6,907 bases of DNA from Octopus sinensis (GCF_006345805.1 NW_021824091.1:1-6907), one strand, 5' to 3'; shown: positions 1 through 6,907, numbered from the stretch's first letter. Notes: a model not told the origin generated them from the sequence alone. Numbers and translations are program-made.

Positions 1-3000
1 AGGGGGACAAGGGAAACCGGGGAGGCGACGGGCAAGCCGGCGCCAGAACGGAGGGAGCGGGCGAGCGCGCGCTCGACAAAGGGAACCGGAGGCCAGGCGA
101 ACCGCAAGCCGGAATCCGAGCCCGGAGCGCGGCCCAGCGGGCAGCCAGGGGGCGGGCGGGCGGGGGGCCCCGCGCACCAGGACGAGCGAGAAGGGAAAGG
201 CCCAAGGCAAGGGCAACGCCCGTGCGAGGGCCGCAGCAAGGGCTGAAAAGGGCGCGTGACGACGGGGGGGGTGCGGGGGGCGACGGGTAAGCGGCAGACA
301 GGGGGACGAAAAGGAACCGGGGAGGCGACGGGCCAAGGCCGGCGCCAGAACGGGAGGGAGCGGGCGAGCGCGCGCGCGACAAAAGGAAACCGGAGGCCAG
401 GCGACCGCAAGCCGGAAGCCGAGCGCGGCCCAGCGGGCAGCAGCAGGGGGGGGGCGGGGGGGGGGCCGCCGCGCACCAGGACGAGGCGAGAAGGGAAAGG
501 CCAAGGCAAGGGCAACGCCCGGGCGAGGGCCGCAGCAAGGGCGGAAAAAGGGAGCGGACGAGGGGAGGGGGGGGACGACGGGGCGGCAGACAGGGGGACG
601 AAAAGGGAACCGGGGAGGCGACGGAAGCCGGCGCCAGACGGGAGGGAGCGGGCGAGCGCGCGCGCGACAAAAGGGAACCGGAGGGCCCAGGCGACCGCAA
701 CGGGGAAGCCGAGCGCGCCCAGCGGCGCCCAGCGGCAGGAGCCAGGGGCGGGCGGGGGGGGCGCCGCGCACCAGGACGAGGCGAGAAGGGAAAGGCCCAA
801 GGCAAGGGCAACGCCCGGGCGAGGGCCGCACAAGGGCGGAAAAAGGGAGCGGACGAGGGGAGGCGGGGGGGGACGACGGGGCTGCGGCAGACAGGGGGAC
901 GAAAAGGGACCGGGGAGGCGACGTGCAAGGGCCGGCGCCAGAACGGGAGGGAGCGGGCGAGCGCGCGCGCGACAAAAGGGAACCGGAGGCCAGGCGGACC
1001 CGCAAGCCGAAGCCGAGCGCGGCCCAGCGGGCCCAGCGGGCAGCGGGCGGCGGGGGGGGCCGCCGCGCGCACCAGGACGAGGCGAGAAGGGAAAGGCCCA
1101 AGCAAGGGCAACGCCCGGCGGAGGCCGCAGCAAGGGCGGAAAAAGGGAGCGGACGAGGGGAGGCGGGGGGACGACGGGCGGCAGACAGGGGGACGAAAAG
1201 GGAACCGGGGAGGCGACGGGCAACCGGCGCCAGAACGGGAGGATGGAGCGGCGAGCGAGCGCGCTCGCTACAAAGGGAACCGAGGCCAGGCGACCGCAAG
1301 CCGGAAGCCGAGCGCGGCCCAGCGGCAGCCAGGGGGCGGGCGGGCGGGGGGGCCGCTCGCACCAGGACGAGGCGAGAAGGGAAAGGCCCAAGGCAAGGGC
1401 AACGCCCGGGCGAGGGGCCCGCAGCAAGGGCGGAAAAAGGGAGCGGACTAGGGAGGCGGGGGGACGACGGTGGCGGCAGACAGGGGGACGAAAAGGAACC
1501 GGGGAGGCGACGGTCAAGCCGGCCGCCAGAACGGGAGGAGCGGGCGAGCGCGCGCGCGACAAAAGGGAACCGGAGCCAGGGCGACCCAAGCCGGAAGCCG
1601 ACGCTGCCCAGCGGGCAGCCAGGGGGGGGGCGGGCGGGGGGGGCCGCCGCGCACCAGGACAGGCGAGAAGGGAAAGGCCCAGGCAAGGCAACGCCCGGGC
1701 GGGGGCGCAGCAAGGCGGAAAAAGGAGCGTACGAGGGGAGCGGGGGGGCGCAGGGCGGCAGACAGGGGGACGAAAAGGGAACCGGGGAGGGACGGGCCAC
1801 AAGCGGCGCCAGAACAACGGAGTGAGCGGGCGAGGCGCGCCGCGACAAAGGGAACCGGAGGAGGCCAGGCGACCTCAAGCCGGAAGCCGAGCGCGGCCCA
1901 GCGGGCAGCCAGGGGGGGGGGGGGGCGGGGGCGGGGGGGCCGCCGCGCACCATGACGAGGCGAGAAGGGAAAGGCCCAAGGCAAGGGCAACGCCCGGGCG
2001 AGGGCCGCAGCAAGGGCGGAAAAGGGAGCGGACGAGGGGAGGCGGGGGACGCGACGGGGCGGCAGACAGGGGGACGAAAAGGGAACCGGGGAGGCGACGG
2101 GCAGGACCGGCGCCAGAACGGGGGGAGCGGGCGAGCGCGCGCGCGACAAAAGGGAACCTGAGGGCCAGGCGACCGCAAGCCGGAGCCGAGCGCGGCCCAG
2201 CGCGGCCCAGCGGCGCAGCGGCACAGGGGGGCGGGCGGGGGGCCGCCGCCACCAGGACGAGGCGAGAAGGGAAAGGCCCAAGGCAAGGGCAACGCCCGGG
2301 CGAGGGCCCAGCAAGGGCGGAAAAAGGGACGGACGAGGGGAGGCGGGGGGACGACGAACGGGGGCGGCAGACAGGGGGACGAAAAGGAACCGGGAGCGAC
2401 TGCACCAAGCCGGCGCCAGAACGGGAGGGAGCGTGCGACGCGCGCGCGACAAGTGGAACCGGAGGCCAGGCGACCGCAAGCCGGAAGCCGAGCGCGGCCC
2501 AGCGCGGCGCAGCGGGCAGCCAGGGGCGGGCCGGGGGGCGCCGCGCACCAGGAACGGGCGAGAAGGGAAAGGCCCAGGAAACAAGGCAACGCCGGGCGGG
2601 AGGGCCGCAGCAAGGGCGGAAAAAGGGAGCGGACGAGGGGAGGCGGGGGGGGACTACGGGGGGCGGCAGACATGGGGGACGAAAAGAAACCGGGTAGGCG
2701 ACGGCAACCGCGCCAGAACGGGAGGGAGCGGGCGAGCTCGCGCGCCGACAAAGGGAACCGGAGGCCAGGCGGACCACCGCAAGAAGCCAAGCGCAGCGCG
2801 GCCCAGCGCGCCCAGCGCGCCCAGCTGGGCAGCCAGGGGGGGGCGGGGGGGGGCCGCCGCGCACCAGGACGATGCGAGAAGGAAAGGCCCAAGGCAAGGG
2901 CAACGCCCGGTGCGAGGGCCGCAGCAAGGGCGGAAAAGGGAGCGGACGAGGGGAGAGGCGGGGGGACGACGGGCGGCGGCAACAGGGGGACGGAAAAGGG

Positions 3001-4204
3001 AACCGGGGAGGCGACGGGTCAAGCCGGCGCCAGAACGGGAGGGGCGGGCGAGCGCGCGCGCGACAAAAGGGAACCGGAGGGCCAGCGACGACGCAACCGG
3101 AAGCCGAGCGGCCCAGCGCGGCCCAGCGCGGCGCAGCGGGCAGCCGGGGCGGGCGGGGGGCGCCGCGCACCAGGACGAGGCGAGAAGGGAAAGGCCCAAG
3201 GCAGGGCCAACGCCCGGCGGGAAGGGCCGCAGCAAGGGCGGAAAAAGGGAGCGTACGAGGGGAGAGTCGGGGGACGACGGGGCGGCAGACAGGGGGACGA
3301 AAAGGAACCGGGGAGGCGACGGGCAAGCCGGCGCCAGAACGGAGGGAGCGGGCGAGCGCGCGCGCGACAAAAGGGAACCGGAGCCAGCGAACCGCAAGCC
3401 GGAAGCCTAGCGCGCCCAGCGCGGGCGCAGCGGGCAGCAGGGGCGGGGCGGGGGCCGCCGCGCAACAGGACGAGGCGAGAAGGGAAAGGCCCAAGGCAAG
3501 GGCCAACGCCCGGGCGAGGGCCGCAGCAAGGGCGGAAAGGGAGCGGACGAGGGGAGGCGGGGGGAGACGACGGGCGGCGCAGACAGGGGGGACGAAAGGG
3601 ACCGGGGACGGGCGACCGGCAAGGGGGCGCAGAACGGGAGGGAGCGGGCGAGCCCGCGCGCGACAAAAGGGAACCGGAGCCAGGCGACCGCAAGCCGGAA
3701 GCCGAGCGCGGCCCAGCGCGGCGCGCGGCCCAGCGCGGCGCAGCGTCAAGCCAGGGGGCGGCGGGGGGGGGCCGCCGCGGCACCAGGACGAGGCGATAAG
3801 GGAAAGGCCCAAGGCAAGGGCAACGCCCGGCGAGGCCGCAGCAAGGGCGGAAAAAGGGAGCGGACGACGAGGGGAGGTGGCGGGGGGACGACGGGGCGGC
3901 AGACAGGGGGACAAAAGTGGAACCTGGGAGGCGACGGGCAAGCCGGCGCCAGAACGGGAGGGAGCGGGCGAGCGCGCGCGCGACAAAATGGAACCGAGGC
4001 CAGCGACCGCAAGCCGAAGCCGAGCGCGGCCCACGCGGCCCAGCGGGCAGCCAGCGGGCAGGGGGGCGGGGGGGGCCGCCGCGCACCAGGACGAGGCGAG
4101 AAGGGAAAGGCCCAAGGCAAGGGCAACGCCCGGGCGGAGGCCGCAGCAAGGCGGAAAAAGGGAGCGGACGAGGGGAGGCGGGGGGACGAACGGGGCGGCA
4201 GACA

Positions 4205-4237
4205 GGGGGACGAAAAGGGAACCGGGGAGGCGACGGG
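4205..4237 (+). other. Putative G-quadruplex-forming sequence (G5-N7-G3-N4-G4-N7-G3), recurring at the start of most units
   Basis: GGGGG ACGAAAA GGG AACC GGGG AGGCGAC GGG matches the canonical G3+N1-7 x4 pattern. This is a motif match only; folding is not shown. Confidence 0.6.
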
Positions 4238-4317
4238 CAAGCCGGCGCCAGAACGGGAGGGAGCGGGCGAGCGCGCGCGCGACAAAGGGAACCGGAGGCC
4301 AGGCGACCGCAAGCCGG
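4209..4317 (+). repeat. Intra-monomer diverged direct repeat (sub-repeat A 4209-4245, sub-repeat B 4281-4317), present in every unit
   Basis: A = GACGAAAAGGGAACCGGGGAGGCGACGGGCAAGCCGG and B = GACAAAGGGAACCGGAGGCCAGGCGACCGCAAGCCGG. The blocks AAAGGGAACCGG, AGGCGAC and GCAAGCCGG are shared in the same order, 72 bp apart. Confidence 0.9.
4271..4281. other. Alternating (GC)5G tract, a potential Z-DNA-forming element, once per unit
   Basis: GCGCGCGCGCG at 4271-4281, with equivalents at, for example, 5519-5527 and 6097-6107. It is self-complementary and contains overlapping BssHII (GCGCGC) sites. Confidence 0.55.
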
Positions 4318-4323
4318 AAGCCG

Positions 4324-4365
4324 AGCGCGGCCCAGCGCGGCCCCAGCGCGGCGCAGCGGGCAGCC
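4324..4365 (+). repeat. Nested variable-copy 10-mer (AGCGCGGCCC / CCCAGCGCGG), shown for unit 15; copy number varies between units
   Basis: Unit 15 reads GAGCGCGGCCCAGCGCGGCCCCAGCGCGGCGCAGCGGGCAGCC, whereas unit 19 (from 5569) reads GAGCGCGGCCCAGCGGGCAGCC. The length steps of about 10 and 20 bp account for much of the variation in unit length. Confidence 0.88.
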
Positions 4366-4430
4366 AGGGGCGGGCGGGGGGCCGCCGCGCACCAGGACGA
4401 GGCGAGAAGGGAAAGGCCCAGCAAGGGCAA

Positions 4431-4440
4431 CGCCCGGGCG
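4431..4440. other. Perfect 10-bp palindrome CGCCCGGGCG (contains SrfI GCCCGGGC and SmaI CCCGGG sites), once per consensus unit
   Basis: Read directly at 4431-4440. The GCCCGGGC core is intact in about 15 of the 23 units. Confidence 0.8.
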
Positions 4441-6907
4441 AGGGCCGCAGCAAGGGCGGAAAAAGGGAGCGGACGAGGGGAGGCGGGGGGACGACGGGGC
4501 GGCGGCAGACAGGGGGACGAAAAGGGAACCGGGGAGGCGACGGGCAACGGCAAGCCAGCGCCAGAACGGGAGGGAGCGGGCGAGCGCGCGCGCGACAAAG
4601 GGAACCGGAGGCCAGGCGACCGCAAGCCGGAAGCCGAGCGGCCGGCCCAGCGCGCGCAGCGGGCAGCCAGGGGCGGGCGGGGGGGCCGCCGCGCACCAGA
4701 CAGGCGAGAGGGAAAGGCCCAGTCAAGGCAAAGCAAGGGCAACGCCCGGGCGAGGGCCGCAGCAAGGGCGGAAAAAGGGAGCGGACGAGGGAGGCGGGGG
4801 GACGACGACGGGGCGGCAGACAGGGGACGAAAAGGGAACCGGGGAGGCGACGGGCAAGCCGGCGCCAGAACGGGAGGGAGCGGGCGAGCGCGCGCGCGAC
4901 AAAAGGAACCGGAGGCCAGGCGACCGCAAGCCGGAAGCCGAGCGCGGCCCAGCGCGGCCCCGCGCGGCGCAGCGGCAGCCAGGGGCGGGCGGGGGGGGGG
5001 CGCCCGCACCAGGACGAGGCGAGAAGGAAAGGCCCAAGGCAAGGCAACGCCCGGGCGAGGGCCGCAGCAAGGGCGGAAAAGGGGAGCTGACGAGGGGAAG
5101 GCGGGGGGACGACGGGGCGGCAGACAGGGGGACGGGGGGGAAAAGGGAACCGGGGGCGACGGGCAAGCCGGCGCCAGAACGGGAGGGAGCGGGCGAGCGC
5201 GCGCGCGACAAGGGAACCGGAGGCCAGGCTAACCGCAAGCCGGAGCCAGCCGAGCGCGGCCCAGCGCTGGCCCAGCGCGCGCAGCAGGCACCAGCCAGGG
5301 GGCGGGGGCGGGGGGGCCGCCGCGCACCAGGACGAGGCGAGAAGGGAAAGGCCCAAGGCAAGGGCAACGCCCGGGCGAGGGCCGCAGCAAGGGCGGAAAA
5401 AGGGAGCGGACGAGGGGAGGCGGGGGGGGACGACGGGGCGGCGGCAGACAGGGGGGACGAAAAGGGAACCGGGAGGCGACGGGCAAGCCGGCGCCAGAAC
5501 GGGAGGGAGCGGGCGAGCGCGCGCGCGACAAAAGGGAACCGGAGGCAGGCGACCGCAAGCCGGAAGCCGAGCGCGGCCCAGCGGGCAGCCAGGGGGGGGC
5601 GGGCGGGGGGGCCGCCGCGCACCAGGACGAGGCGAGAAGGGAAAGGCCCAAGGCAAGGGCAACGCCCGGGCGGGGCCGCAGCAAGGGCGGAAAAAGGGAG
5701 CGGACGAGTGGAGGCGGGGGGACGACGACGGCGGCAGACAGGGGACGAAAAGGGAACCGGGAGGCGACGGGCAAGCCGGCGCCAGAACGGGAGGGAGCGG
5801 CGAGCGCGCGCGCGACAAAAGGGAACCGGAGGCCAGGCGACCGCAAGCCGGAAGCCGAGCGCGGCCCAGCGGCAGCCAGGGGGGCGGGCGGGGGGGGGGG
5901 GGGGCCGCCGCGCACCAGGACGAGGCGAGAAGGGAAAGGCCCAAGCAAGGGCAACGCCCGGGCGAGGGCCGCAGCAAGGGCGGAAAAAGGGAGCGGACGA
6001 GGGAGGCGGGGGGACGACGACGGCGGCAGACAGGGGGACGAAAAGGAACCGGGGAGGCGACGGGCAAGCCGCGCCAGAACGGGAGGGAGCGGGCGAGCGC
6101 GCGCGCGACAAAAGGGAACCGAGGCCAGCGACCGCAAGCCGGAAGCCGAGCGCGGCCCAGCGCGGCCCAGCGGCAGCCAGGGGGGGGCGGGCGGGCGGGG
6201 GGGGGGCCGCCGCGCGCACCAGGACGAGGCGAGAAGGGAAAGGCCCAAGGCAAGGGCAACGCCCGGGCGGAGGGCCGCAGCAAGGGCGGAAAAAGGGAGC
6301 GGACGAGTGGAGGCGGGGGGACGGACGGGGCGGCAGACAGGGGACGAAAAGGGAACCGGGGAGGCGACGGGCAAGCCGGCGCCAGAACGGGAGGGAGCGG
6401 GCGAGCGCGCGCGCTCGACAAAGGGAACCGGAGGCCAGGCGACCGCAAGCCGGAAGCCGAGCGCGGCCCAGCGGCAGCCAGGGGGCGGGCGGGGGGGCCG
6501 CCGCGCACCAGGACGAGGCGAGAAGGGAAAGGCCAAGGCAAGGGCAACGCCCGGGCGAGGGCCGCAGCAAGGGCGGAAAAAGGGAGCGGACGAGTGGAGG
6601 CGGGGGGACGACGGGGCGGCAGACAGGGGGACGAAAAGGGAACCGGGGAGGCGACGGGCAAGCCGGCGCCAGAACGGGAGGGAGCGGGCGAGCGCGCGCG
6701 CGACAAAGGGAACCGGAGCCAGGCGACCGCAAGCCGGAAGCCGAGCGCGGCCCAGCGGCAGCCAGGGGGGCGGGCGGGGGGGCGGGGGGCCGCCGCGCAC
6801 CAGGACGAGGCGAGAAGGGAAAGGCCCAAGGCAAGGGCAACGCCCGGCGAGGGCCGCAGCAAGGGCGGAAAAAGGGAGCGGACGAGGGGAGGCGGGGGGA
6901 CGACGGG

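Follow-up and report, generated by a model that had tools for sequence, protein, structure and literature searches.

A thymine-poor tandem array of a complex unit of about 300 bp in Octopus sinensis, provisionally read as satellite DNA

Background

Tandem repeats in which one strand is missing a base are known from satellites with short units, such as the HS-beta satellite of the kangaroo rat, (ACACAGCGGG)n, and the purine satellites of Drosophila, (AAGAG)n. The subject of this report is a stretch of 6,907 nucleotides from Octopus sinensis (GCF_006345805.1, NW_021824091.1:1-6907), called the window below. It consists of head-to-tail copies of a complex unit of about 300 bp, and the consensus of the strand as presented (the + strand) contains no T. 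The array shares with the HS-beta and AAGAG satellites a long head-to-tail, non-coding organization, an extreme strand asymmetry and a G-rich strand without T. It differs from them in that their units are only 5 to 10 bp long, a length at which a missing letter is unremarkable, whereas the unit described here is a complex text, about 290 bp long, that contains 69 A but not a single T. We know of no precedent for a complex unit of about 300 bp that is missing one letter.

Two other systems invite comparison. Immunoglobulin switch regions lie within introns that are transcribed and consist of T-containing motifs (AGCT, GGGGT); like these regions and like GC-rich minisatellites, the array is a kilobase-sized tandem repeat with clusters of G on one strand, a GC skew (+0.29 here) and many G-quadruplex (G4) motifs. 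Unlike in switch regions, AGCT is found only 3 times in 6.9 kb, at stray T, and the dense AGCT/WGCW pattern is absent. The G-less cassette of transcription assays is a designed, single three-letter cassette lacking G, and it resembles our unit in that complex sequence, some hundreds of bases long, has a strand on which one base is missing. Here, however, the T-free text is a heterogeneous array of 23 copies, with G-runs as long as 15 and slippage-type variation, neither of which would be a designer's choice. We assign the array provisionally to satellite DNA with an extreme three-letter strand. The reading that we favour, and to which we give about an even chance, is that of a real non-coding satellite that goes back to an ancestor without T and has kept its three-letter strand through slippage-dominated change and homogenization.

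Results and discussion

Anatomy and composition of the array

All statements on the lack of T refer to the record as deposited and not to the DNA molecule itself. The window contains 3372 G, 1872 C, 1613 A and 50 T (0.72%), and three long runs are entirely free of T: 3990-4722 (733 nt), 5710-6307 and 289-882 (594 nt). The initial annotation, made from the sequence alone, had counted about 50 T (~0.7%) and had placed the first and last of these runs at exactly these coordinates; the run at 5710-6307 is added here. Tandem Repeats Finder (TRF) reported a single array at 9-6907 with a period of 304, 22.9 copies, 85% matches and 10% insertions and deletions (indels), and described the final 5.5 copies with a period of 292 and 91% matches. 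Both ends of the array lie inside a unit, so that the window is without flanking unique sequence. Cutting at a conserved anchor gave 23 monomers of 282 to 324 bp, numbered m01 to m23. The array and the starts of its monomers are as follows.

1-6907, no strand assigned: the window in full, a direct tandem array of 23 copies without interruption (TRF, anchor matches and monomer alignment)
Starts of m01 to m12: 1 (partial), 295, 587, 888, 1182, 1477, 1759, 2063, 2368, 2667, 2980, 3286
Starts of m13 to m23: 3580, 3900, 4199, 4506, 4817, 5121, 5445, 5735, 6027, 6334, 6620 (partial)

In the majority consensus of the monomers, which is 298 nt long, G occurs 150 times, C 79 times, A 69 times and T not at all; together with TRF this bears out the T-free consensus proposed earlier (about 145 G, 76 C, 69 A and 0 T). 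Composition is flat along the window: in bins of 1 kb the GC content is 0.75-0.77, the GC skew +0.26 to +0.30 and the AT skew +0.90 to +0.99. The probability that all 69 A/T positions of the unit are A is 1.7e-21 if A and T are equally likely, 2e-7 if A is favoured 4:1 and 7e-4 at 9:1. The chance of 2^-69 given in the initial annotation is a formal figure only, but the conclusion drawn from it stands, as it does with the 4:1 preference, and the absence of T is beyond chance.

The unit is complex text. Same-base autocorrelation showed no period of 3, no sub-period of ~72 nt and only weak lags of 10-12 nt, which are due to a block of 10-bp sub-repeats, in agreement with the earlier description of a complex unit of ~300 bp that is not a microsatellite. 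The count of repeated 7-mers in the unit is close to a hand estimate for random three-letter text. CpG dinucleotides are not depleted (observed/expected 1.05 over the window), and the longest G-runs reach 15. Of the palindromic restriction sites, those of six enzymes with A/T in the site, among them EcoRI, HindIII, BamHI, MseI (TTAA) and Sau3AI (GATC), have no occurrence in the window; AGCT, GTAC and CATG have 2-3 sites each, at stray T only, while GGCC, CCGG and GCGC (HaeIII, HpaII and HhaI) have 105-189 sites. The two structural features by which satellite DNA is recognized, a head-to-tail array of kilobase size and a non-coding unit, are both present.

Differences between the copies

Among the differences between copies, indels far outnumber substitutions. 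To count substitutions cleanly we required perfectly aligned flanks and set aside the G-run columns and one A/G run boundary; this left 28 G>T, about 5 G>C, 4 A>G, 4 G>A, 1 C>T and 1 C>A. G>T affects about 1.2% of the G positions, compared with ~0.2% per site for the other substitutions. It is strand-asymmetric (28 events against the single C>A), about half of the events follow a C, and it may stem from oxidative damage of the G-rich strand or from platform-specific confusion of G and T. Substitutions to T fall in G columns in 40 of 43 cases (p 1.9e-9), and T counts are higher in the noisier copies (Spearman 0.75, p 4e-5).

Among changes in run length, losses greatly exceed gains, and the rate per base stays nearly the same, 3-4% for G and 1.5-3% for A or C. 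The differences are bursty (dispersion index 4), ranging from 2 to 31 per copy over 254 conserved columns when compared with the consensus, with 2-5 in the best copies. Almost all are private to one copy and amount to 4-11% per copy; distances between copies are star-like with radii of 11-33, and no higher-order period or lag was found among the distances of the 23 monomers. At the same time, exact stretches of 99-104 bp are common to distant copies, and the best pairs are 5-6% different. Because transitions, usual in natural divergence, are nearly absent, we regard most of the differences as probably technical. The overall picture looks like that of an array with fairly homogeneous copies, overlaid by long-read-type error that is nanopore-like or stems from a poorly polished long-read contig, with real variation in the 10-bp sub-repeat in addition.

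T is concentrated in the first 4 kb (42 of 50), where most of the noisy copies lie as well (m01, m05, m06, m09, m10 and m13), and the last 2.9 kb are much cleaner. This difference between 1-4000 and 4001-6907 could be a gradient in read quality or a more diverged flank of the array.

Two kinds of variation probably are real differences between copies on top of the error, namely the length forms in steps of 10 bp and a recurrent T. The features concerned are listed here.

6334-6619, + strand: representative short-form unit of 286 bp with one GCGCGGCCCA unit, near the consensus (4 differences in 254 conserved columns)
4199-4505, + strand: representative long-form unit of 307 bp with three 10-bp units, the cleanest copy and free of T (2 differences in 254 conserved columns)
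4325-4355, + strand: block of 10-bp sub-repeats, (GCGCGGCCCA)n followed by the variant GCGCGGCGCA (TRF rows of period 9/10)
5709 (m19), 6308 (m21) and 6595 (m22), + strand: recurrent T in alignment column 352, GAGTGG for GAGGGG, in copies 19, 21 and 22 only

The short-form unit lies at an edit distance of 15-19 from m02, m19, m20 and m23. The copy number of (GCGCGGCCCA)n differs among monomers and is the source of most of the variation in unit length: the anchor-to-anchor segment that holds the block measures 42-72 bp in steps of about 10 bp, and TRF rows of period 9/10 were returned at 2794-2825, 3108-3138, 3701-3745 (the largest block), 4320-4358 and 4937-4974. Nine segments are at least 56 bp long and all of them lie within m08-m21; strong clustering of the sub-repeat number along the array was not borne out by a runs test at one cut-off (z = +0.63). 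The five cleanest copies contain 4 T, and 3 of these belong to GAGTGG, which is probably a real G>T variant that spreads locally; its recurrence suggests that T is callable where it is present. Variants shared by neighbours are otherwise few, being limited to this T in m19, m21 and m22 and the long forms in m08-m21.

Search for relatives

The literal sequence of the unit is absent from the viral genomes of IMG/VR, the GTDB species genomes and the JGI metagenomes, eukaryotic genomes being outside the DNA searches. No match was obtained by BLAST with plasmids, phages and the genomes of E. coli as targets. Translations of either strand had no relative among 5.8 billion clustered proteins, and the translation of the + strand had none in an exhaustive phmmer scan of 1.84 billion representatives. 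A literature search on the k-mers of the unit, on thymine-free repeats and on platform-specific confusion of G and T returned nothing usable. The unit is an orphan in the collections searched, and the initial annotation, too, had not recognized the repeat family.

Origin of the three-letter strand

Under the favoured reading of a real, T-free satellite, a GC-rich unit of ~290 bp (76% GC), repeated head to tail, would have arisen from a T-free, G-rich sequence, and the three-letter strand would be an accident of descent that is not upheld by selection. Change would consist mainly of slippage and of small duplications or deletions, by which the letters present are shuffled and none is added, and unequal exchange or gene conversion would spread the T-free master copy again and again. 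T would enter as occasional G>T changes or miscalls and would seldom spread, with m19, m21 and m22 as the one visible exception. Such letter-conserving change fits the great excess of indels over substitutions. The 2-5 differences per 254 columns in the best copies and the exact stretches of 99-104 bp make the read-out look faithful and unscrambled. Support for a real array also comes from the length steps of 10 bp, the confinement of the long forms to m08-m21 and the T variant of m19, m21 and m22. The anatomy of the array, its three-letter consensus, the lack of a coding signal, the error profile and the orphan status were observed directly, and from the whole we infer that the template lacks T and that a seed followed by homogenization gave rise to the array. 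The initial annotation had offered growth from a T-free seed with strand-biased mutation: the seed is viable, but a mutational bias that avoids T is contradicted by G>T being the commonest substitution (28 events).

Several points weigh against this reading. We know of no mutational or selective process that keeps a random-looking text of 300 bp one letter short on one strand, and cryptic simplicity of the seed is not borne out by the 7-mer count, which is about that of random three-letter text. With private, bursty differences of 4-11% per copy, the window can be no better than a long-read product with poor polishing; the near absence of transitions (G>A 2-4, C>T 1) means that most of these differences are probably technical and carry little evolutionary information. 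The sum of G and T (3422) is close to that of A and C (3485), as hidden T read as G would give, and as random text with 50% G would give too. Finally, no independent occurrence was found in the viral, GTDB, JGI, plasmid, phage and E. coli collections searched.

A base-calling origin

The initial annotation left out long-read-type errors, and it is these that make a base-calling origin a serious rival. According to this explanation, a real periodic array has one strand that is systematically mis-rendered by a nanopore-type base-caller, through an unusual signal, modified bases or a mismatched model, and the three-letter text is not the true sequence; we regard this as possible but doubtful. The errors in the window have the character of long-read errors: most are indels, runs tend to lose bases, and the differences come in bursts that are mostly private to a copy. 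In addition, copies with more noise have more T calls (Spearman 0.75, p 4e-5), and the array is without a relative in the collections searched. Strand-specific phantom satellites are documented in nanopore data. TTAGGG has been read as TTAAAA, and CCCTAA as CTTCTT or CCCTGG (Tan et al. 2022, PMC9414165); AAGAC has been read as AAAC, a form that is absent from Illumina reads and shows a strand ratio of 41:1 (Carvalho et al. 2026, preprint, 10.64898/2026.07.13.738322). Our array resembles these phantoms in its unusual letter composition and in being a poorly characterized repeat in long-read data; the phantoms are strand-specific and lack a counterpart in other data types.

The documented cases are, however, all simple repeats of about 6 bp or less, in which the current profile of one simple repeat mimics that of another, whereas the unit described here is a complex one of ~290-300 bp that is accurately reproduced in distant copies. 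No comparable case involves a complex unit of 300 bp with ~70 hypothetical T positions in varied contexts. An off-model signal should reproduce poorly, yet stretches of 99-104 bp are exact and substitutions other than G>T stay at ~0.2%. Bulky thymine modifications are reported to block nanopore sequencing and not to yield clean miscalls (PMC12686479), and for phages with hypermodified thymine the papers describe failed sequencing and no reading of T as G. The T that is common to three neighbouring copies further suggests that T is called when it is present.

T read as G and library artefacts

A second technical explanation places the loss of T in a single read or library molecule: a collapse of channels within the read, so that T is read as G, repeated passes around a short insert capped by hairpins, or a concatemer made by rolling-circle copying of one small circle. 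We consider it very unlikely that any of these produced the array, even though the copy-to-copy differences resemble read noise. Channel collapse would account for the balance of G+T and A+C (3422 against 3485 in the window, 150 against 148 in the consensus, with similar run-length spectra) and for the strong preference of substitutions to T for G columns (40 of 43, p 1.9e-9), but the balance is equally given by random three-letter text with 50% G. The recurrence of T in the same columns does not discriminate: 4 coincident pairs were observed, with 3.1 expected if any G column can be affected, which fits slightly better, and 6.9 if the T are drawn from a fixed subset of 45%. Run-length instability is linear in run length and thus uninformative on this question. 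Channel collapse needs a uniformly noisy single-pass read, and the patchy accuracy and the exact matches of 99-104 bp rule this out. In addition, we made a degenerate search with two independent conserved segments, writing every G as K (G or T), and found no four-letter original by these patterns in IMG/VR, the GTDB genomes and the JGI metagenomes (eukaryotic genomes were again outside the search). The reading of T as G is not supported by these results.

The two library models were rejected as well. For an alternating-strand read of a hairpin library, the collapsed-complement alignment scored 82, below the shuffles (102 +/- 17), and there is no inverted symmetry of K and M. The copies differ by whole units of 10 bp, so they are not successive passes over one circle, as a rolling-circle concatemer would require.

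Coding capacity, RNA and selection

The window is crossed by very long open reading frames (ORFs) of up to 1055 codons, which overlap on both strands and include frames of 786-813 codons on the + strand. Examples in the class of 700-1055 codons are listed here.

1875-5042, - strand: long ORF
3746-6862, - strand: long ORF
256-2697, + strand: long ORF
2872-5232, + strand: long ORF

All six frames are open because the stop codons TAA, TAG and TGA need a T on one strand or an A on the other, and the huge ORFs are by-products of composition, although a gene caller could list them as genes. Base-by-phase chi-square in windows of 60 nt was 3.64, against 4.11 in shuffles, which indicates no codon phase, and with clean unit lengths of 286, 288, 292 and 307 bp and a sub-repeat of 10 bp there is no maintained reading frame. 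The unit matches no Rfam family, neither strand folds better than shuffled sequence (z -0.8 and +0.05), no sigma-70-like promoter is possible in the window, and terminator-like sites are fewer than in shuffles. The unit encodes no protein and no structured RNA; it is non-coding.

These results bear on the possibility that the array is a purine-loaded coding repeat, in which the + strand encodes a long disordered protein rich in Gly, Arg, Glu, Lys and Ala, similar to the Gly-Ala repeat of EBNA1 or to low-complexity proteins of very GC-rich bacteria. T-free codons do cover Gly, Ala, Arg, Pro, Glu, Asp, Lys, Asn, Gln, His, Thr and Ser, and the + strand is open for 786-813 codons. Against this stand the absence of codon phase and of period-3 autocorrelation, clean unit lengths that are not multiples of 3 together with length steps of 10 bp, runs of 4-5 A that do not fit high-GC codon usage, and the lack of homologues among the 5.8 billion clusters and 1.84 billion representatives. 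We give the coding repeat hardly any credence and rejected it for want of a phase signal and of homologues; the analogy to EBNA1 drawn in the initial annotation falls with it, the repeat being non-coding. A structured RNA was rejected in turn, with no Rfam match and with folding no better than in shuffles.

A further explanation takes the three-letter strand as real and as maintained by selection or by a dedicated route of synthesis, with a transcript without U or an antisense transcript without A. Conceivable reasons include escape from a nuclease that depends on U or A, the absence of stops from all six frames and copying from a template without one base. The absence of T far beyond chance would agree with this, as would its persistence in spite of G>T at about 1.2% of the G positions, which is compatible with a purging of T-bearing copies, and the six open frames of up to 1055 codons. 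On the other side there are no RNA structure signal, no Rfam match, no codon phase and no homologous protein, and the window holds no flanking genes and the searches no second occurrence by which conservation could be seen; homogenization from a T-free master accounts for the same facts without selection. The selection on a U-free or A-free transcript suggested in the initial annotation thus found no backing in fold, Rfam family, codon phase or promoter-like sites. We hold a maintained strand to be improbable. If it were true, the array would be a genomic element of kilobase size with a U-free transcript (or an A-free antisense) and with all frames free of stops, and would define a new type of element under compositional constraint, a claim that we likewise think improbable.

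Other features of the unit

Further features are given with their positions in the long-form unit m15.

4271-4281, no strand assigned: alternating (GC)5-6 tract, once per unit, palindromic and of the Z-DNA-prone type (regular expression on m15)
4365-4389, + strand: block of G-runs (CAGGGGCGGGCGGGGGGCCGCCGCG) in which the unit is least stable, with variability highest in alignment columns 205-236; the G-quadruplex motifs have their core here
4211-4245, + strand: first arm (CGAAAAGGGAACCGGGGAGGCGACGGGCAAGCCGG) of an internal duplication of ~36 bp, with the second arm at ~4280-4317 and 7-mers in common at an offset of ~71

The palindromic arms of the (GC) tract, CGAGCGCGCG and CGCGCGCGCG, occur once per unit, and the inverted repeats of the window are short and made of G and C only. 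The local alignment of the internal duplication scored 41, modestly above the shuffles (27.5 +/- 4.3, maximum 43). The + strand of the window carries 40 canonical G4 motifs, 1-3 per monomer, and the - strand none, and runs of three or more G occur at 63 per kb. The G-quadruplex and R-loop propensity that the initial annotation had predicted from the G-skewed strand agrees with these counts; judged by composition only, the + strand would be prone to form G-quadruplexes, and transcription with + as the non-template strand would give rise to R-loops.

In m16 and m18 there are short duplications seen in no other copy, one of ~13 nt and GTCAAGGCAAAGC-like in m16 (4724-4737), and the other an extra GGGGGGGAAAAGGGAACC-like segment in m18 (about 5135-5150). 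Both are of the slippage type and larger than ordinary read errors.

Conclusions

Taking the neutral satellite and the maintained strand together, we consider it somewhat better than even that the template is a real T-free one. The chance that the array corresponds to no real feature in any genome is about one in three, and the remaining artefact and coding models, even when combined, are very unlikely. If the three-letter text is a base-calling phantom, it would serve as a warning: the repeat artefacts of nanopore sequencing would extend from simple repeats to complex units, and such junk would give ORFs of 1000 codons on both strands that gene callers could mistake for genes. If instead the satellite is real, it would be the longest natural three-letter text known to us. 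Its resistance to all restriction enzymes with an A or T in a palindromic site would make the array easy to purify, and it would offer a natural substrate for the formation of G-quadruplexes and R-loops, for strand-asymmetric damage (G>T) and for a letter-conserving evolution of repeats.

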